The notes: generated from the sequence alone by a model not told the origin. DNA of 64,000 nucleotides from IMGVR_UViG_3300032268_000832:242464-306463, one strand, 5' to 3'. Numbered from the stretch's first letter, positions 222-45,491 are shown. Made by a program: numbers and translations.

Positions 222-255
222 TTTGCAAGATTAAAAATTTACTCGTATATTTGCA
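222..255 (+). promoter_or_regulatory. Bacteroidota sigma70-type promoter (representative of about 25 copies)
   Basis: TTTG-N~19-TATATTTG. The same motif precedes gene blocks near 1123, 2079, 4179, 6118, 8507, 9960, 10900, 16957, 18609, 22223, 25919, 30524, 32199, 41155, 43382, 45503, 46990, 47979, 49807, 55546, 57431, 59435, 60745, 61928, 62298 and 63885. Confidence 0.85.
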
Positions 256-1378: not shown

Positions 1379-1551
1379 CTACAGTAAGACGGTTAGCCTT
1401 ACGTAAAGAACTTTAAGACACCATGGAAGGTTTTAAAGGGAAATGACGCTAACAGCTGAGGAAGTGCTAGAACTTCTGGGTTTGCAGTTCGGACCCTCTC
1501 CCAAAGAAAACACTGCAATGGTACTATCATGGGAACGATAGTACCAAAACA

Positions 1552-1627
1552 CGGGGATAGCATAAGGGCGGCAGTTCCTTGCAGAACGTATACTAGTTGC
1601 CGAGGGGTTCGACTCCCTTCTCCCCGA
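1552..1627 (+). ncRNA. degenerate tRNA-like RNA (acceptor and T arm only)
   Basis: CGGGGA/TCCCCG acceptor, AGGGG-TTCGACT-CCCTT T arm; no canonical D or anticodon arm. Confidence 0.55.
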
Positions 1628-1819: not shown

Positions 1820-1965
1820 TAGGTAAAGAAAGATTATTTCAGCAATTTAAATCAACAGCCTCCTAAGCTCGTGGTCGCAGGTTCGAATCCTGTCTAGTTT
1901 TTCCTAGGAAAAGCAAGTAGCTCAGTTGGATAGAGCACGTATGAAAAAATTAATCTTGTTACCTA
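1820..1965 (+). ncRNA. circularly permuted tRNA-Arg(CCT)-like RNA in a terminal helix (YrlA/Y RNA-like)
   Basis: order is anticodon arm (ACAGC-CTCCTAA-GCT), T arm (GCAGG-TTCGAAT-CCTGT), loop-closed acceptor stem, D arm (TAGCTCAGTTGGATAGAGCA); ends pair TAGGTAA/TTACCTA and AAGATTA/TAATCTT. Confidence 0.75.
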
Positions 1966-1968
1966 CAT

Positions 1969-2044
1969 ATGAGGATAGCTCAGTTGGTAGAGCGCTCGGT
2001 GGTTCGCTGCCGAGAGGTTGCAGGTTCGAGTCCTGCTCCTTGTA
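1969..2044 (+). ncRNA. anticodon-less tRNA-like RNA (UUCG-capped arm)
   Basis: ATGAGGA/TCCTTGT acceptor, canonical D and T arms; anticodon arm is CTCGGTGG-TTCG-CTGCCGAG (8-bp stem, tetraloop). Confidence 0.8.
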
Positions 2045-2136
2045 CAAAAAAATTTTTAACTATTATTTAACAAAAAAATTTTGTAGTTACAAAAATACTT
2101 AGTATATTTGCATTGTAAAACATAAACAATAACAAA

Positions 2137-4244: not shown

Positions 4245-6059
4245 ATGGGAAGAATCCTTAAAATTCAAAAATTGACTACCTTTGCAGAAGGTGTAATTGT
4301 TGCTCTTGGAGCAGTATTGGTAATGGGTATCGTGTACTTCGTGTCACCAGGCCTACGTGTAGAAGTGTCTAAAACACTTGGTGGTTTAGAGCTTAATTCA
4401 GAAACCTTGAACAATGTAACAGCTGGTACTAAATTGCCGTTGCCATCTAGTACTCCATCAAGTGAAGTTGCTTCAAAAGGTCTTATTAGAATTGCAGAGT
4501 ATGCATGGAATGGTAACTCTGGTATGATTGTAGCTAACGGTGGACCACGCACAACTGAGGGGTCGCTTATGGAAGCCGCAGGTGTAAACTTAGAAATTGT
4601 TCGTCAAGACATGGTTGGTGGTTTACGTGATATGCAAGTAAAATTCGTTGAAGAATTTGATGGTGGTGCCGCTTATCCTAAATCTGATAAATCAGCTGTT
4701 GCTGTATCTATCATGGGTGATGGTGTTCCATTCTATATCACAACTACACAAAAATCGTTAGATGAAAAATTCGGTAAGGGTAAATACCACGTACAAGCGA
4801 TTGCACAATATGGTTTATCATACGGTGAAGATAAGCTTATCGGACCACAAATTTGGAAAGATAACCCTCAATCATTGAAAGGTGCTGTTATTTCTTCTGT
4901 AATCGGTGACGGTGACTGGGTTGTAGCTTGTAACTATGCGTTCGCTAACAAAATTCCAGTAAATCCAGACCCAAAAACTTACGACCCTAATGCGATTAAC
5001 TTCGTACCATCACCAAATGATGACTTTATTGAATCTGTAAAAGACTTGATTAAATCTCAAACAGCTGGTTATACGGTTCCATTAAAAGAGGTTAAAGATG
5101 GTAAATTAACTGGTAAGACGGTTAACCGTAAGATTGATGGTGCTACTACGTGGACTCCAGGTGATAAGATGGCTTTCGATGCGTTGACTGGTTTCACAGA
5201 TGTTGTTTCAACAAAAGAGTTTGTGAATCAAATGGCTACTACGCTTGTAATTGTTAAAGAGTGGGCTGTACAACACGATAAAGAAGTTATCAATTTATTG
5301 AAACAAACTTATGTTGCTTCTAATCAAATCAAACAATACGATGAATGGGCTCGTAAAGCGGCTGAGTGTGTAGCTAAAACATACAACGCAGAAACTGCTG
5401 AATACTGGTATAATATGTTCAAAGGACAAAAAGGTACCAAAGCTGGTTTAGGTTACGATGTTGGTGGTACAAGAGTATTCAACTATGCTGATGCAATGCA
5501 ATACAACGGTATCTCTGATGGTAACAACAGATACAAAGCAGTATATGACCAAGTTTCCGCTTATTTGACTGACTTGAACCCATGTGGTTTCAATGAAACT
5601 TGCCCTGAGGGTGTTATACCTTACGATGACGCGGTTAACTTATACTTCTTAAAATCAATTAACATTGGTGATGCAGGTAAAACTGAAAAAATATCATATG
5701 CTGAAAACAAAACTAAAGTTTTAGCTAGTGGTCAATGGAACATCAACTTTGCAACTGGTAGTTCAGCTATCCAAGGGTCTGAAAAAGACTTAGAAACGAT
5801 ATATAACTTGTTAGTGCAAGCTGAGGAAGCAAAACTTAAAGTTGTTGGTCACACTGATAACGTAGGTAACTCAAATTCTAATATGGACTTGTCAAAAGGA
5901 CGTGCTAACTCTGTAGTTGCATATTTAACAAGTAGAGGTATCTCTAAAGAACGTTTCCAATTGGTAGACGGAAAAGGTGATACACAACCTATCGGTGATA
6001 ACAACACTGTATCAGGTAAAGCTAAAAATAGACGTGTAGAAATTACTCTATTAAAATAG
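4245..6059 (+). CDS. ABC substrate-binding protein (SsuA/TauA/NMT1-like) fused to C-terminal OmpA-like peptidoglycan-binding domain
   Basis: N-terminal TM; C-terminal motifs INFATGSS, VVGHTDNVG, LSKGRANSV, NRRVEI; adjacent permease and ATPase. Confidence 0.85.
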   Translation: MGRILKIQKLTTFAEGVIVALGAVLVMGIVYFVSPGLRVEVSKTLGGLELNSETLNNVTAGTKLPLPSSTPSSEVASKGLIRIAEYAWNGNSGMIVANGGPRTTEGSLMEAAGVNLEIVRQDMVGGLRDMQVKFVEEFDGGAAYPKSDKSAVAVSIMGDGVPFYITTTQKSLDEKFGKGKYHVQAIAQYGLSYGEDKLIGPQIWKDNPQSLKGAVISSVIGDGDWVVACNYAFANKIPVNPDPKTYDPNAINFVPSPNDDFIESVKDLIKSQTAGYTVPLKEVKDGKLTGKTVNRKIDGATTWTPGDKMAFDALTGFTDVVSTKEFVNQMATTLVIVKEWAVQHDKEVINLLKQTYVASNQIKQYDEWARKAAECVAKTYNAETAEYWYNMFKGQKGTKAGLGYDVGGTRVFNYADAMQYNGISDGNNRYKAVYDQVSAYLTDLNPCGFNETCPEGVIPYDDAVNLYFLKSINIGDAGKTEKISYAENKTKVLASGQWNINFATGSSAIQGSEKDLETIYNLLVQAEEAKLKVVGHTDNVGNSNSNMDLSKGRANSVVAYLTSRGISKERFQLVDGKGDTQPIGDNNTVSGKAKNRRVEITLLK

Positions 6060-6076
6060 TGTTCGTGTTTTAATTA

Positions 6077-6110
6077 AAAAGTCCCTGATTAACATCAGGG
6101 ATTTTTTTTT
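6077..6110 (+). terminator. intrinsic terminator
   Basis: GTCCCTGAT-TAAC-ATCAGGGAT followed by a T run. Confidence 0.8.
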
Positions 6111-6166
6111 ATTATTATTTGGTAGTTTGAAAAATAAATAGTATTTTTGTATAAAATTATAACACA

Positions 6167-6946
6167 ATGAAAAATATAATTAAAATGTTTGTCCCTTTTC
6201 AAACAATAAAAGGGTCTGAAAAAACAATAATGCTAACAATATGGTTAGTTTCTTTGTTTGCTATTTGGGGTGTTTGTGCTATGGGTACAACGCACTTGTT
6301 TCCAACACCGTCACAAGTGTTGAAAGGGTTTGGAACTATATGGACTGATGGTCTTATTGTTCATTTATTCAATTCTTTAGCGTTATGTGCTCAAGCTGTT
6401 TTAATTTCAGTTTTTATTTCTTTGTTTGTAACTTATTTAAGTACGTTACCATTCTTTAAGGGTTGGGCTGACTTTATTTCAAAGCTTAGATTCTTACCGC
6501 TAGCTGGTATTACATTTTACATCACTATTATCATTTCTAGTGCAAGAACTATACAAGTATGGGTACTTGTAATGTTTATGTCGACTTATTTGATTACATC
6601 GCTTGTACAGATGATTAAAGACATTTCACAAGAAGAATTTGACCATGCAAGAACGCTTGGTTGTAACAGATGGGAAATGCTTTGGGAAGTGGTGATTAAA
6701 GGACGTTTTGATTACGTATTTGAATTGGTTAGACAAAACCTTGCGATTGTATGGATGATGCTTGTAAGTATTGAGAGTATCCTTATCGCTGCTGGTGGTC
6801 TTGGTGTTCTTATTAAGAATGGTGATAAGGTTGGTGACAACGGACGTGTTATTGCGGTTCAAATTGTGATTATCCTTGTTGGTATCGTGCTTGACTTCTT
6901 GTTAACAAAATTAAGAAAATTAATATTCAGGTATTCTAACTTTTAA
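6167..6946 (+). CDS. ABC permease, NitT/TauT/SsuC family
   Basis: FPTPSQV motif, six TM segments, EAA-like loop EEFDHARTLGCNR, AGGLG. Confidence 0.9.
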   Translation: MKNIIKMFVPFQTIKGSEKTIMLTIWLVSLFAIWGVCAMGTTHLFPTPSQVLKGFGTIWTDGLIVHLFNSLALCAQAVLISVFISLFVTYLSTLPFFKGWADFISKLRFLPLAGITFYITIIISSARTIQVWVLVMFMSTYLITSLVQMIKDISQEEFDHARTLGCNRWEMLWEVVIKGRFDYVFELVRQNLAIVWMMLVSIESILIAAGGLGVLIKNGDKVGDNGRVIAVQIVIILVGIVLDFLLTKLRKLIFRYSNF

Positions 6947-6957
6947 AATTAAAAATT

Positions 6958-7149
6958 ATGCTGTATGTTTTAATCATTATTATTTGTGGGTTAATTGGTG
7001 GTTTAATAGTTATAACTATTGATTATTTGTTTAATTTATTTTCTAATAAAAAAAGTAATATAGTTACTTATGAGAAAATAAAACAAACACCTGAACAATT
7101 AAAAATTAGTAAACGTTTAGATGAAATGTTAGAAGAGTTTAAAAAATAA
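6958..7149 (+). CDS. small membrane protein
   Basis: single TM ORF between permease and ATPase. Confidence 0.65.
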   Translation: MLYVLIIIICGLIGGLIVITIDYLFNLFSNKKSNIVTYEKIKQTPEQLKISKRLDEMLEEFKK

Positions 7150-7154
7150 AAATT

Positions 7155-7976
7155 ATGCCGTATACAACAAATGAAACGCTATTATACGTTGATAACGTAA
7201 GCGCAGGTTACGATGGGAAAGTCATTATTAAAGACATCAACATCATAGAAAGAAATGTAATAAGAAAAGACTTTGATTCAACTGGTCAAGTTATTGCAGT
7301 GTTGGGACGTTCAGGTAGAGGTAAGTCTACATTGTTTAAAGTTCTTACTGGTTTATTAAAACCAATGAGTGGTCAAATATTATTGGCTGATATGGATACT
7401 GACGATTCAAGCGATGCTAAACCTTTAGATGAAGGTGATGTTGGTTTTGTTGACCAAAAATACACGCTTTTCAGACATAAAACAGTTACTCAGATTTGTC
7501 AATACGCTATGCGTAAATCAACTTACCCTAAAGCAGAAAAAGATACTATCATAAACGATTATCTTACAGAATGGGGTCTTTTAGAACATAAAGACAAATA
7601 CCCATGTGAATTATCTGGTGGTCAAAGACAACGTACCGCAATCATTGAACAAATGCTTACCAACAAACACTTTATGATTCTAGATGAACCTTTCTCTGGA
7701 TTAGACGTTGGTAACATTGAAAAAGTTAAACAGTCTTTTGATAAAATTGGTTCGGCACATGAGTCTAACACAATTATGTTTTCAACACACGATATTAAAC
7801 TTGCAGTTGAATTAGCTGATAGTATTTATATTATCGGAAGACCTGAAGGTGTTGATGATTATAGCACTGTTTTAAAACACTATGACTTAAAACAAATGGA
7901 TTTAGCGTGGACACAATATAGTGATAAACATAGAGAATTGGTCAGTGAAATAAAAACTGTTTTATTGAATTCATAA
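7155..7976 (+). CDS. ABC ATPase, NitT/TauT family
   Basis: Walker A GRSGRGKS, signature LSGGQ, Walker B ILDEPFSGLD, H-loop STHD. Confidence 0.95.
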   Translation: MPYTTNETLLYVDNVSAGYDGKVIIKDINIIERNVIRKDFDSTGQVIAVLGRSGRGKSTLFKVLTGLLKPMSGQILLADMDTDDSSDAKPLDEGDVGFVDQKYTLFRHKTVTQICQYAMRKSTYPKAEKDTIINDYLTEWGLLEHKDKYPCELSGGQRQRTAIIEQMLTNKHFMILDEPFSGLDVGNIEKVKQSFDKIGSAHESNTIMFSTHDIKLAVELADSIYIIGRPEGVDDYSTVLKHYDLKQMDLAWTQYSDKHRELVSEIKTVLLNS

Positions 7977-8790: not shown

Positions 8791-8885
8791 CTGGTAATGC
8801 GCGAGATGGTTTAAGCGGTCGGACTTGGAATCCGATGAGGGCACAAAGGTAGTGTCTTCCACAGGTTCGAATCCTGTTTACCAGA
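8791..8885 (+). tRNA. tRNA-Pro(TGG) with long variable arm (atypical)
   Basis: C1:G72 and A73; TCGGA-CTTGGAA-TCCGA; about 25-nt variable arm; ACAGG-TTCGAAT-CCTGT. Confidence 0.8.
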
Positions 8886-8913
8886 CAAGAAATACAAAAC
8901 ACAAAACAAAAAA

Positions 8914-38143: not shown

Positions 38144-38212
38144 TAAACAGCCCGCTATAAAATAGTGGGTTTTTTTATTGTTAAAAAGAAAAAAAATAAG
38201 TATTTTTGTAAT

Positions 38213-40168
38213 ATGAATAAAGAAAATAAAATAAAAATAGGTGATGTTTTAGAAGGTAGAATAAGTGTTAACGCTAGTGGTTCAGCATATTTGACGGACC
38301 CAAATCTACCAAAAGACATTTACATACACAAATCCAACACCAACAAGGCGTTGCATTTGGATAAAGTAAAAATCCGCACCAAAGAAGGTGTTGGTAGAGC
38401 AATGGAAGGTGAAGTAATTGAAATCGTTGAACGATTCAGAACGGAATTTGTAGGTACGCTTCAAATAAGTCCTAAATTTGCATTTTTTATCCCAGACAGT
38501 AACAAATTACCAATAGACTTTTTTATACCGTTAAACTCGCTTAATAAAGCTCAAAATGGTCAAAAAGTTGTTGTTAGACTTACTGAATGGAAAGATGATG
38601 CAAAGAACCCTAATGGTGAAGTTATTCGCGTGTTGGGTGATGCTGGTGAGCACGAAACTGAGATACACAGTATACTTGAAGAATATGGATTACCATACGA
38701 TTTTGAGGAAGATGTGTTAGCAGAAGCTAGAGCGATTCCAATTGAGATAACACAAGCTGAAATTGATAAACGTAGAGATATGCGTAACGTACTTACGTTC
38801 ACCATTGACCCAGCGGATGCCAAAGATTTTGATGATGCGTTGAGCGTTGAATGGGTTGACGGTGAGCTGTTTGTTGGTATTCACATTGCTGACGTATCAC
38901 ACTACTTACGTCCAGACACAGAGTTAGACAAAGAAGCGTTTGCCAGAGGTACCAGTGTGTATTTAGTTGACAGATGCGTTCCAATGCTTCCTGAGAACTT
39001 ATCTAACGGATTGTGTAGTCTTAGACCTAACGAGGACAAATTGTGTTTCTCAGCGGTGTTTAAGTTGGACCAAAACGGTCATGTGTTGGAAGAATGGTTC
39101 GGTAGAACTGTGATAAACTCTAACCGTAGATTTACTTACGAAGAAGCACAGATGCTTATTGAAGCCAAAAAGTTACCAGAAGAATATGAAGAATATTTCC
39201 AAACAGAGGAAGGTCATGCGTTATGGAAATCTATTCTAACACTTAATAGAATAGCACAGAAAATGCGCAAAGGTCGTTCAAAGAAAGGTTCTATTTCGTT
39301 TGACAAACAAGAGGTTAAGTTCAAGTTGGATGAAAACAACAAACCAGTTGGTATTCATTTCAAGGTTGCAAAGGATTCAAATAAACTTATTGAAGAATTT
39401 ATGTTGTTGGCAAACAGACATGTTGCTCAATACATAAACAAACGAGAATTACCTAATGTAAACAGAGCGCATGATAAACCTAACGATGATAAATTAAATA
39501 ACTTAAAAGAATTTATTTCACAGTTTGGATATGAAATCCGTATTGATACACCAGAAGAAACTACAAGAACGCTTAACCAGTTGTTGTTGGACGTTAGAGG
39601 TACTGCTGAGGAAGATATGATTAACAACTTGGTTGTGAGAACAATGCAGAAAGCAAACTATACAACCAAAAACATTGGTCACTATGGACTTGGGTTCAAA
39701 GACTACAGCCACTTCACCAGTCCGATTAGACGTTATCCTGACGTTATAACACACAGACTGTTAGGGTTGTACTTGGAGAACAAACCAACGCTACCTAAGA
39801 TTGAAAAACTAGAAGCTAGATGTCAACACTTATCTGAAAGAGAAAAGAAAGCACAGAAAGCCGAAAGAGATTCAATTAAATTTATGCAGTGTGTGTATAT
39901 GAGTGAAAACGTAGGTAAAGTGTTCAAAGGAATAGTTAGTTCTGTAACGGAATACGGTATCTTTGTTGAAATTTTAGAGAACAAGTGTGAAGGACTTATC
40001 AAATTATCTGAAATACAAGGTGACACATATCAAGCTGATACTTTAAATCATTGTGTTAAGGGTTATAACACTGGTCACAAGATTAGACTTGGTGATATGG
40101 TTCATGTAATAGTTTCAAGTGTAGATATAGAAAAAAAGAACATAAATTTATCTTTGATTAACCTTTAA
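38213..40168 (+). CDS. rnr: ribonuclease R
   Basis: cold-shock domains, FTIDPADAKDFDDALS, LIEEFMLLAN, HFTSPIRRYPD, C-terminal S1. Confidence 0.96.
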   Translation: MNKENKIKIGDVLEGRISVNASGSAYLTDPNLPKDIYIHKSNTNKALHLDKVKIRTKEGVGRAMEGEVIEIVERFRTEFVGTLQISPKFAFFIPDSNKLPIDFFIPLNSLNKAQNGQKVVVRLTEWKDDAKNPNGEVIRVLGDAGEHETEIHSILEEYGLPYDFEEDVLAEARAIPIEITQAEIDKRRDMRNVLTFTIDPADAKDFDDALSVEWVDGELFVGIHIADVSHYLRPDTELDKEAFARGTSVYLVDRCVPMLPENLSNGLCSLRPNEDKLCFSAVFKLDQNGHVLEEWFGRTVINSNRRFTYEEAQMLIEAKKLPEEYEEYFQTEEGHALWKSILTLNRIAQKMRKGRSKKGSISFDKQEVKFKLDENNKPVGIHFKVAKDSNKLIEEFMLLANRHVAQYINKRELPNVNRAHDKPNDDKLNNLKEFISQFGYEIRIDTPEETTRTLNQLLLDVRGTAEEDMINNLVVRTMQKANYTTKNIGHYGLGFKDYSHFTSPIRRYPDVITHRLLGLYLENKPTLPKIEKLEARCQHLSEREKKAQKAERDSIKFMQCVYMSENVGKVFKGIVSSVTEYGIFVEILENKCEGLIKLSEIQGDTYQADTLNHCVKGYNTGHKIRLGDMVHVIVSSVDIEKKNINLSLINL

Positions 40169-43338: not shown

Positions 43339-43401
43339 AAAAATAATCATAAAAAAATTTGACTTGAATTAAAAAAGTTAGTATATTTGCATTATAAAAT
43401 A

Positions 43402-43585: not shown

Positions 43586-43684
43586 GCGAGAGTGGCGAAG
43601 TTGGTAAACGCTAAGGTTTTTAGCCAGAAGTACTATGGAACAACTAAGAACTTGGTGTCGGTGGTTCGAGCCCACCCTCTCGCA
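43586..43684 (+). ncRNA. tRNA-Leu-like RNA with extended non-canonical anticodon arm
   Basis: GCGAGAG/CTCTCGC-A, TGGCGAAGTTGGTAAACGC D arm, GGTGG-TTCGAGC-CCACC; no 7-nt anticodon loop. Confidence 0.75.
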
Positions 43685-43696
43685 CAATTAAAATAG

Positions 43697-43890
43697 AAAA
43701 CTTTCTACAGAAGACATATTAGCGATGTTGAAAGGAACCTTGGCTTCATGGGATTAGCTACCCAACCGAAGTTCGAATGCCCCAAGGTACTCTGTGATGG
43801 ACCCTGCTCTGATGTGCACGATTAACAGGTGAGAAGTAAAATATTCTCAGTAAAATCCACAACTGCGGTGAGCGTAGAGAAGGTTTTTTT
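43697..43890 (+). ncRNA. candidate structured RNA, about 190 nt
   Basis: TTCTAC/GTAGAG and ACCTTGG/CCAAGGT stems; GC-rich; no ORF. Confidence 0.45.
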
Positions 43891-43901: not shown

Positions 43902-44019
43902 GGTTAGGTGGCGGAATAGTAGACGCTCGGAGGTCAAAAGATTTTGTACATAACTGCGGTAAGTGAGGATATTGACTGTTGAACACTTACAATTACAGGT
44001 TCAAGTCCTGTCCTAACCA
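43902..44019 (+). ncRNA. tRNA-like RNA with expanded anticodon/variable region
   Basis: GGTTAGG/CCTAACC-A, TGGCGGAATAGTAGACGC, ACAGG-TTCAAGT-CCTGT; about 68-nt middle with GTAAGTG/CACTTAC stem. Confidence 0.75.
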
Positions 44020-44219: not shown

Positions 44220-44295
44220 ATCCGTATAGCTCAATTGGTAGAGTATTCGGTCCGAGGGGGCCGAAAGGTTGTAGGTTCGAGTCCTACTGCGGATA
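44220..44295 (+). ncRNA. anticodon-less tRNA-like RNA (tetraloop-capped arm)
   Basis: ATCCGTA/TGCGGAT-A; TTCGGTCC-GAGG-GGGCCGAA; GTAGG-TTCGAGT-CCTAC. Confidence 0.8.
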
Positions 44296-45032: not shown

Positions 45033-45491
45033 ATGAAAAATTTAATAACAAACCGTAAGGCTTATTATGAATATCATATTTCAGAAACTCTGTCATGTGG
45101 TATTCAATTAAATGGTTCTGAAATAAGACCAATAAAAGAATCAAAGACATCTATAAACGAAGCTTACTGTTACATATCAGAAGGTGAACTTTTCATCAAA
45201 GGGATGTATGTTGCACCACATAATGGTAACATTAAGAACTATACACATGATACCAATAGAGATAGAAAATTATTGGTTAAAAAAATTGAAATTGAAAGAC
45301 TTCAACAAAAGGTTGGTGAGAAAGGGATGACGATTGTTCCAGTTTCTATCGTATTAAATGATAAAGGTTTAATAAAAATAATCATTGGTTTGGCTAAGGG
45401 TAAAAACGTGAGGGACAAATCTGTAGCTATTAAACTTAAAGATTTAGATAGAGATATGAAAAAAAATATTAAAAATAATTTTGGAGAATAA
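45033..45491 (+). CDS. smpB: SsrA-binding protein
   Basis: NRKAYYEY, GIQLNGSEI, RDRKLL, GMTIVP, GLAKGK. Confidence 0.95.
   Translation: MKNLITNRKAYYEYHISETLSCGIQLNGSEIRPIKESKTSINEAYCYISEGELFIKGMYVAPHNGNIKNYTHDTNRDRKLLVKKIEIERLQQKVGEKGMTIVPVSIVLNDKGLIKIIIGLAKGKNVRDKSVAIKLKDLDRDMKKNIKNNFGE

Follow-up and report, generated by a model that had tools for sequence, protein, structure and literature searches.

Genes for tRNA in phages are usually explained by codon usage or by the replacement of tRNAs that host defences destroy. The tRNA shape is also found in RNAs that do not decode. The mascRNA of MALAT1, the MEN-beta tRNA-like RNA and the vtRNAs of gammaherpesvirus 68 are cut by RNase P and RNase Z and receive a CCA end, and excision of tRNA-like RNAs of the mascRNA type defines the 3' end of the upstream RNA. 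These RNAs come from eukaryotes or a eukaryotic virus, their anticodon arms are poorly conserved, and none is known to be aminoacylated. In engineered tRNA scaffolds an RNA is inserted in the anticodon stem and the tRNA body provides processing and stability. Furthermore, work on minihelices established that charging by AlaRS needs no anticodon. Y RNA-like RNAs can be cleaved by RNase P and extended with CCA (PMC4201824). The present analysis concerns und1, a tRNA-shaped gene of the IMG/VR virus record IMGVR_UViG_3300032268_000832 in which a closed helix stands in place of the anticodon loop. The window, i.e. the whole stretch of 64,000 nucleotides analyzed (242464-306463), is the final 64 kb of this 306,463-bp record (completeness rating 86%), which derives from a freshwater jumbo phage present in many lake-water metagenomes. 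A search of the full-text literature yielded no report of a natural phage tRNA gene with its anticodon loop replaced by a capped helix, and und1 appears to be a previously undescribed architecture within the known kind of tRNA mimics. The evidence presented below makes it very probable that und1 is a functional, non-decoding tRNA mimic.

The acceptor stem of und1 comprises seven pairs (A1-U72, U2.G71, G3.U70, A4-U69, G5-C68, G6-C67 and A7-U66) and is followed by the discriminator A73. U8 and A9 lead into a canonical D arm with G18G19 (GCUC/AGUUGGUA/GAGC), and a variable loop of AGGUU precedes a canonical T arm (GCAGG/UUCGAGU/CCUGC) with a UUCRA loop. In the anticodon arm, a 5-bp stem (CUCGG/CCGAG) encloses ten nucleotides that fold as three base pairs and a UUCG cap (UGG-UUCG-CUG; U.G, G.U and G-C), and the 7-nt loop with U33, a 3-nt anticodon and purine 37 of a decoding tRNA is absent. 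The Rfam tRNA model (RF00005) gave und1 a score of 54.2 bits (gathering score 29; E 6.8e-9 in a search of the window), with the loop modelled as an insertion, and ARAGORN called it tRNA-???, an undetermined isotype with a 4-base 'ttcg' anticodon. The minimum-free-energy structure computed with RNAfold was a cloverleaf with an 8-bp anticodon arm and a tetraloop (-29.3 kcal/mol). An earlier sequence-only reading had described normal acceptor, D and T arms, an anticodon loop replaced by three base pairs and UUCG, and an acceptor with G3.U70, U2.G71 and A73, and had anticipated an undetermined anticodon call; the sequence, ARAGORN, Rfam and RNAfold bear out this description. In a comparison with the phage tRNAs, und1 and its paralog und2 were each about 70% identical to several isotypes, and no parent isoacceptor of und1 could be named, since it was no closer to the phage tRNA-Ala than to Gly, Phe or Val tRNAs.

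Taken alone, the extra pairs of und1, two of which are wobbles, are within chance, as 405 of 2000 shuffles of the ten nucleotides folded equally well. The folding z-score of the whole molecule (RNAfold) was only -1.7, and the UUCG cap is closed by G-C rather than by the extra-stable C-G. Closure of the arm is established by comparison, because the paralog and the orthologs all carry closed inserts. In und2, the five base pairs are extended by U.G, C-G and C-G and capped by a GAGG loop (UCC-GAGG-GGG; UCCGAGGGGG between the stem halves) that holds no U usable as U33. Diverged orthologs of und1 were retrieved through the flanking 377-aa gene and a pattern for the T arm and 3' acceptor strand; the flanking protein is only about 72% identical in these relatives. 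Their inserts (Table 1) include GNRA-capped hairpins that also keep a 3x3 internal loop. The occurrence of three GNRA caps (GAAA, GCAA and GUAA) on one helix is the usual signature of selection for a GNRA tetraloop. None of the orthologs or paralogs has a 7-nt loop with U33 and R37. A normal loop in homologs, which the earlier reading had named as the sign of a recent mutation or assembly error, was therefore not encountered; the homologs carry other capped hairpins.

Furthermore, four other assemblies made independently, of which three are IMG/VR contigs and one is a metagenome contig, contain the identical 76 nt, with flanks that differ by about 4%; the same sequence also recurs in many lake metagenomes. 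The identical copies rule out an assembly error. A recent lesion is likewise ruled out by diverged orthologs with a compensated tRNA body and other closed inserts. The und1 gene is tRNA-shaped and cannot decode, in agreement with the earlier proposal of a non-decoding tRNA, the gene being real, conserved and without a 7-nt loop in any copy.

The contrary reading, in which und1 decodes either as a quadruplet or expanded-loop frameshift suppressor or after removal of a mini-intron that restores a 7-nt loop, is the least probable of those considered. ARAGORN places 4-base anticodons (ttcg in und1, gagg in und2) in 8-nt loops, and tRNAs with 8-nt loops do exist on other viral contigs, but no U33/R37 framing is present, und2 lacks a usable U, and the ortholog inserts reach 18 and 53 nt. 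Quadruplet decoding was rejected on the absence of an 8-nt loop framed by U33 and on insert lengths of 10, 18 and 53 nt. An intron was rejected on the absence of any intron family match in Rfam (group I included), of bulge-helix-bulge geometry and of an RtcB ligase gene in the phage, although a splicing endonuclease gene was not searched for. The standard genetic code also fits the genome, with long stop-free frames covering 89% and recoding adding almost nothing. Two suppressor-type tRNA genes were noted in the phage, an amber one with anticodon CUA (G000:199106-199179) and an opal one with anticodon UCA (G000:239866-239941).

A scan of IMG/VR with a strict pattern returned identical und1 copies only. 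A loose pattern returned viral tRNAs with 20-nt anticodon arms that are unrelated to und1 and none of which has G3.U70; sporadic capped arms in L028 and L045 are among these unrelated matches. An abundant, likewise unrelated family of viral tRNAs with the acceptor GCGCAAG... was also among these matches, on 35-65-kb contigs (L010-L071; e.g. L014:10652-10699 and L013:5052-5099). Its members have a 6-bp anticodon stem and an 8-nt loop with a variable middle (UUUAUGAG, UUCUUCCC, UUUCUCCC), and are possible quadruplet decoders or another non-canonical class.

The tRNA body of und1 was examined for conservation of its helices. In the set formed by und2 and five und1 variants, standard pairs occupy 124 of 126 helix cells, and ten positions have changed on both sides. 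The acceptor, D, proximal anticodon and T helices are kept through compensatory changes, and between the window and the L076 copy the compensated pairs are 5:68, 13:22, 30:40, 31:39 and 50:64. The ortholog with the 53-nt insert was misaligned by MAFFT and was parsed by script for the pair counts instead. In alignment A4, 98.3% of cells are paired, compared with 42-49% when the partners are slid, and six pairs change on both sides; none of 500 shuffles reached the covariation score, although controls of this kind are inflated by relatedness among the sequences. Variation is greatest in the insert, and the T arm and the 3' acceptor strand hardly vary. Judging from these substitutions, und1 is selectively maintained.

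Decay of a tRNA pseudogene in a fast-evolving tRNA island is accordingly very unlikely. The tRNA islands of this clade do turn over fast, with different tRNA-like elements at the same sites in L078 and L094, und2 is lineage-specific, and closure of the ten nucleotides in the window is not significant alone. A decaying gene would nevertheless have to accommodate many compensatory changes with almost no broken pairs beside a flanking protein that has diverged to about 72% identity, the near invariance of the T arm and 3' acceptor strand, caps that remain in stable tetraloop classes, and the presence of the region in RNA libraries.

To assess which amino acid und1 might carry, its acceptor was compared with those of its relatives. 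All five und1 variants retain G3.U70 and A73, although pairs 2:71, 4:69, 5:68 and 7:66 vary among them. Among 145 tRNAs called by ARAGORN in the phage and in the loci of six relatives, G3.U70 occurs in eleven, namely seven of eight tRNA-Ala, four of six undetermined tRNAs and none of the 131 others, and all eleven have A73; two und1 orthologs missed by ARAGORN also carry the pair. A second anticodon-less family in the relatives (L075:3770, L076:4053 and L078:2020) has a 7-bp arm with an AGAC loop, G3.U70 and A73 on three different acceptor sequences, with G2-C71 in all three and G4-C69 in two (L076 and L078). Since G3.U70 is otherwise restricted to tRNA-Ala in this clade, alanine acceptance is a reasonable proposal. 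For tRNAs of class-I shape, AlaRS is the synthetase that makes no contact with the anticodon during charging. Alanine charging by AlaRS is independent of the anticodon, and the bacterial identity set comprises A73, G2-C71, G3.U70, G4-C69 and G20 (PMC9976931, Table 1). Because AlaRS ignores the anticodon, a chargeable anticodon-less tRNA would be expected to carry alanine identity.

Several observations weigh against alanine charging. Only two of the five published determinants, G3.U70 and A73, are found in the und1 of the window, which starts with A1-U72 and has U2.G71, A4-U69 and U20 in place of G2-C71, G4-C69 and G20; this copy may therefore be a poor AlaRS substrate that is charged weakly. 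The orthologs have C2-G71 and G4.U69 at the secondary determinants. G3.U70 is replaced in und2 (C3-G70, with A73) and in L072:7971 (G3-C70), so charging is not essential for every anticodon-less copy, and conservation of G3.U70 within und1 rests on only about three independent lineages. The evidence for alanine identity is thus suggestive rather than proof, and the chances that und1 accepts alanine appear about evenly balanced. The same holds for the combined statement that und1 is a functional, non-decoding, alanine-accepting tRNA mimic. The chargeable tRNA of the sequence-only reading consequently stands in part: the identity pair and A73 are kept and the pair is specific to tRNA-Ala in the clade, while most determinants are missing and und2 has lost the pair.

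The positions of und1, its paralog and the associated elements are collected in Table 1.

Table 1. Features of und1 and und2, their neighbouring elements and the ortholog inserts; positions are those of the window.
Feature	Position	Strand	Basis or description
und1, anticodon-less tRNA-like gene, 76 nt	1969..2044	+	sequence, ARAGORN, Rfam, RNAfold, covariation
und1 acceptor stem	1969-1975 with 2037-2043	+	
und1 D arm	1978-1993	+	
und1 proximal anticodon stem	1995-1999 with 2010-2014	+	
und1 distal 3 bp of anticodon arm	2000-2002 with 2007-2009	+	
und1 UUCG cap	2003-2006	+	
und1 variable loop	2015-2019	+	
und1 T arm	2020-2036	+	
und1 discriminator A73	2044	+	
Y RNA-like (YrlA-like) permuted tRNA-like element	1849..1965	+	sub-threshold YrlA match, relatives, RNA contigs
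Nearest upstream Bacteroidota-type promoter match (TTTG-N-TAnnTTTG), putative start of und1 unit	222..253	+	
Promoter match of next unit (239-aa gene at 2137)	2080..2110	+	conserved in relatives
Promoter match of non-coding array ending in und2	43358..43389	+	
und2, paralog of und1	44220..44295	+	BLAST 78% over 63 nt; 71% full length
Insert at anticodon site, L072/L107			CGA-GGGA-GAAA-UCCC-AGA (18-nt hairpin)
Insert at anticodon site, L104			as L072/L107 but GCAA cap
Insert at anticodon site, L105			GUAA cap; closing G-C replaced by G.U
Insert at anticodon site, L076/L090/L108			53 nt, T-loop-like hairpin inside

Directly upstream of und1 lies a Y RNA-like element that matched the YrlA model (RF02553) with 36 bits (E 5.6e-6), under the gathering score of 69. 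It comprises a T arm, a loop-closed acceptor-like stem, a D arm and pairing 5' and 3' tails, its Ro-binding motif is poor, and compensatory changes accompany its conservation beside und1 in relatives. Within the element, three base pairs also close an anticodon-like loop of 7 nt, which reads CUCCUAA in the window and CUCUUAA in relatives. In the window, L072 and L105, und1 begins 3 nt past this element and the tight junction is kept together with its sequence, while in L076 and L108 the two are about 100 nt apart. The presence of the next promoter match implies that und1 is the last element of its own unit. Contigs from three freshwater metatranscriptomes cover 1732-1988 (depth 24), 1654-1895 (depth 12) and 1837-1988 (depth 5), running from a small open reading frame through the Y RNA-like element into und1, with flanking genes at depth 3-8; they break at 1988, in D-arm sequence common to other tRNAs. 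These contigs fit co-transcription of the Y RNA-like element and und1, with DNA carry-over possible.

The paralog und2 terminates a non-coding array in which a tRNA-like element (43586-43684), a freshwater-1 motif (43793-43855) and a second tRNA-like element (43902-44019) precede it, and which continues into genes for a metallophosphoesterase and SmpB (45033-45491) with no promoter match between. The two tRNA-like elements, both on the plus strand, were missed by ARAGORN and matched the tRNA model with 41.5 and 36.1 bits, respectively; their D arms are of class-II style, their inserts or variable arms are long and their discriminator is A73, and no clear 7-nt anticodon loop is present. A related long tRNA-like family with discriminator G73 was seen in relatives (L077:2903, L075:3848, L076:3845 and L078:659). 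The anticodon-less copies might carry only identities of the Ala, Ser and Leu types. The freshwater-1 RNA motif (RF02979, an orphan; plus strand) scored 70.6 bits (E 4.5e-16), near the gathering threshold of 72. Relatives with 81-84% SmpB identity have no und2 beside SmpB, and und2 is lineage-specific.

The arrangement of both copies bears on an alternative in which the tRNA shape serves as RNase P/RNase Z punctuation and as a 3' cap, and aminoacylation is irrelevant. By analogy with the mascRNA of MALAT1, und1 would set the 3' end of the Y RNA-like RNA, and und2 would separate the non-coding array from the mRNA. The conserved 3-nt junction, the joint presence of the Y RNA-like element and und1 on one RNA contig, and the placement of both copies (und1 closes its unit ahead of the next promoter, and und2 completes the non-coding part ahead of the metallophosphoesterase and SmpB genes) are in its favour, as are the lack of alanine identity in und2 and the hypervariable insert, which would be expected if the tRNA body alone mattered. 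It leaves unexplained why G3.U70 and A73 are fixed beside changing pairs and why a pair that is otherwise confined to tRNA-Ala is enriched among anticodon-less genes. Furthermore, any of the 36 ordinary phage tRNAs could punctuate a transcript, so loss of the anticodon would need a separate explanation, and the spacing of about 100 nt in L076 and L108 does not suit it. Such a processing and stability role is a serious contender, yet one that falls well short of probable.

Proximity to SmpB also bears on the possibility, raised in the sequence-only reading, of an alanyl donor for ribosome rescue, i.e. a minimal message-less tmRNA working with the phage SmpB. G3.U70, A73 and the missing anticodon parallel the tRNA-like domain of tmRNA, the phage encodes SmpB and an RNase R-type nuclease (38165-40168), and und2 is apparently co-transcribed with SmpB. 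Against this, a canonical tmRNA is already present (RF00023 match, 72 bits, G000:194292-194645), with its own G3.U70 and a tag ending in ...ELAVA. On tmRNA, SmpB fills the position of an anticodon arm; in und1 this site is already taken up by complete D and anticodon arms. The SmpB-adjacent copy, und2, is without G3.U70 and is not conserved beside SmpB, and rescue without a message and stop codon could not terminate. A rescue donor is therefore highly improbable. The trans-translation kit of the phage is complete, comprising tmRNA, SmpB and the RNase R-type nuclease, and the discriminator position of the tmRNA acceptor is apparently U rather than A.

In more distant relatives, the place of the und2 array beside SmpB is taken by GOLLD RNA, and GOLLD is linked to trans-translation genes in these phages. 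The matches (about 328 bits; L096:3489-3902, L098:3484-3896 and L099:412-824) lie immediately upstream of SmpB with the tmRNA just downstream. This replacement is relevant to a further alternative, in which the tRNA body presents the capped insert for docking to an RNA or protein, e.g. the Y RNA-like RNA beside und1 or one of the large, ornate RNAs of phages. GNRA caps that stay GNRA in three variants with a conserved 3x3 internal loop would suit docking, as would the T-loop-like hairpin within the 53-nt insert and the equivalent position of GOLLD, which is reported to carry embedded tRNAs. The insert is nevertheless the least conserved part of the molecule (UUCG, GNRA with internal loop, 53 nt, or GAGG in und2), and UUCG loops are not docking modules. 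Rfam models found neither GOLLD nor ROOL in the window. A scaffold of this kind is improbable, though less so than a rescue donor.

The genomic setting is informative with regard to the host and the available enzymes. Bacteroidota-type promoters (TTTG-N17-21-TAnnTTTG) are enriched in the window, with 24 matches against 5.1 +/- 2.3 expected, and the closest protein clusters carry Bacteroidota labels, which makes a host from the Bacteroidota likely. No match among cultured relatives was found when 7.8 kb around the und1 locus were compared with GenBank phages by megablast. ARAGORN predicted 38 tRNA genes in the phage, none of which encodes CCA, and the phage encodes its own CCA-adding enzyme (131 bits; G000:203801-204169). 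Searches of the phage genome found no AlaRS and no FemAB or other Fem-type transferase. In the window, a 96-nt tRNA-Pro(UGG) at 8791-8886 (+) combines a normal anticodon loop with a long variable arm like those of class II and adjoins a normal-sized tRNA-Pro(UGG); other oversized duplicates (Ile, Met, Asn, Cys and Val) occur elsewhere in the phage genome. At 1380-1625 (+), 3' of tRNA-Phe, lies a segment that shares 89% identity with relatives in which the neighbouring protein shares only 64%. Its end resembles a T arm and acceptor (called as tRNA-Pro in L078), so the segment could be a degenerate tRNA or a further conserved non-coding RNA. The genes closest to und1 have no Pfam or PHROG function, their look-alikes being coiled-coil, PspA/IM30-like proteins. 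Downstream of two PspA/IM30-like coiled-coil proteins, an OmpA-domain protein (604 aa), an ABC-transporter permease and an ATPase are encoded at 4245-7976 (+), an envelope-directed cluster that is unusual for a phage.

The preferred explanation for und1 is a tRNA mimic that is processed as a tRNA and acts outside decoding. RNase P would cut at 1968/1969, and this one cut would generate the 5' end of und1 and the 3' terminus of the Y RNA-like RNA; und1 would be trimmed at its 3' end and receive CCA, presumably from the CCA-adding enzyme that the phage supplies. The product would fold into a normal L shape with a nuclease-resistant capped arm and would be alanylated to some degree by the host AlaRS. 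Unable to pair with a codon, it would work off the decoding pathway, where it may form a stable decoy or sink for factors that read the tRNA body or 3' end, e.g. host tRNA-targeting defence enzymes. Among the possible roles, a decoy or sink is ranked first, processing and stability second and a scaffold for the capped insert third; even so, a decoy or anti-defence function is put forward tentatively. The earlier reading had included anticodon nucleases and uncharged-tRNA sensors among the targets. An anticodon nuclease whose recognition depends on the anticodon loop would not bind a decoy that has none, and RelA-type sensors need codon-anticodon pairing, which argues against a decoy of uncharged-tRNA sensors. 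To this difficulty with anticodon nucleases are added two further counterpoints: among the neighbours of und1, which are coiled-coil and envelope-type proteins, no tRNA-using partner enzyme was found, and the RNA support consists of assembled contigs ending at 1988, which are uninformative on 5' and 3' maturation.

A broader reading, offered with comparable reserve, is that Bacteroidota freshwater jumbo phages keep alanine-charged anticodon-less tRNAs as charged decoys or codon-independent alanine donors. It would span at least two families, the und1 lineage and the family with a 7-bp arm and AGAC loop. A synthetase that ignores the anticodon would keep such RNAs chargeable yet invisible to decoding and to anticodon-loop nucleases, and these RNAs might neutralise host immunity directed against the tRNA body, its 3' end or aminoacyl-tRNA.

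In comparison with known systems, und1 shares the cloverleaf body, G3.U70 and A73 with tRNA-Ala, and the identity pair with the alanine minihelices that are charged without an anticodon. It differs from tRNA-Ala in having no anticodon loop, G2-C71, G4-C69 or G20 and in its A1-U72 start. With the tRNA-like domain of tmRNA (RF00023), it shares the nature of a non-decoding tRNA mimic with alanine identity, and a tmRNA and SmpB occur in the same phage. At 76 nt rather than about 350, with full D and anticodon arms and neither pseudoknots nor a tag frame, und1 is distinct from tmRNA, and the RF00023 model did not match it. YrlA (RF02553) is likewise a tRNA mimic without an anticodon loop, and a YrlA-like element lies next to und1. 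The topology is opposite: in the circularly permuted YrlA a loop closes the acceptor and the 'anticodon stem' is left open to serve as Ro-binding stem, whereas und1 has an open acceptor and a closed anticodon arm. A Y RNA identity for und1 was rejected, as it has no YrlA match and is not permuted, and no Ro60/TROVE gene was found in the phage. Unlike mascRNA-type RNAs, und1 has a full canonical elbow and the alanine identity pair. It resembles engineered tRNA scaffolds in its tRNA body with the anticodon loop replaced by a helix and insert, but it is natural, the insert is short and variable, and the body is the conserved part.

As und1 has no anticodon, neither codon usage nor tRNA replacement applies to it, and a conserved, transcribed and probably chargeable tRNA that does not decode suggests that phages use the tRNA shape outside translation. 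A real class of RNA in huge-phage genomes can thus be hidden among 'undetermined' tRNA calls and among matches to the tRNA model that tRNA finders reject. The molecule is small and readily synthesised, with G3.U70 to G3-C70 as the obvious control, and could be used to probe aminoacylation outside decoding during infection. As a natural counterpart of the engineered tRNA scaffold, und1 joins tmRNA, Y RNA-like RNAs and viral tRNA-like structures among the natural mimics of tRNA.
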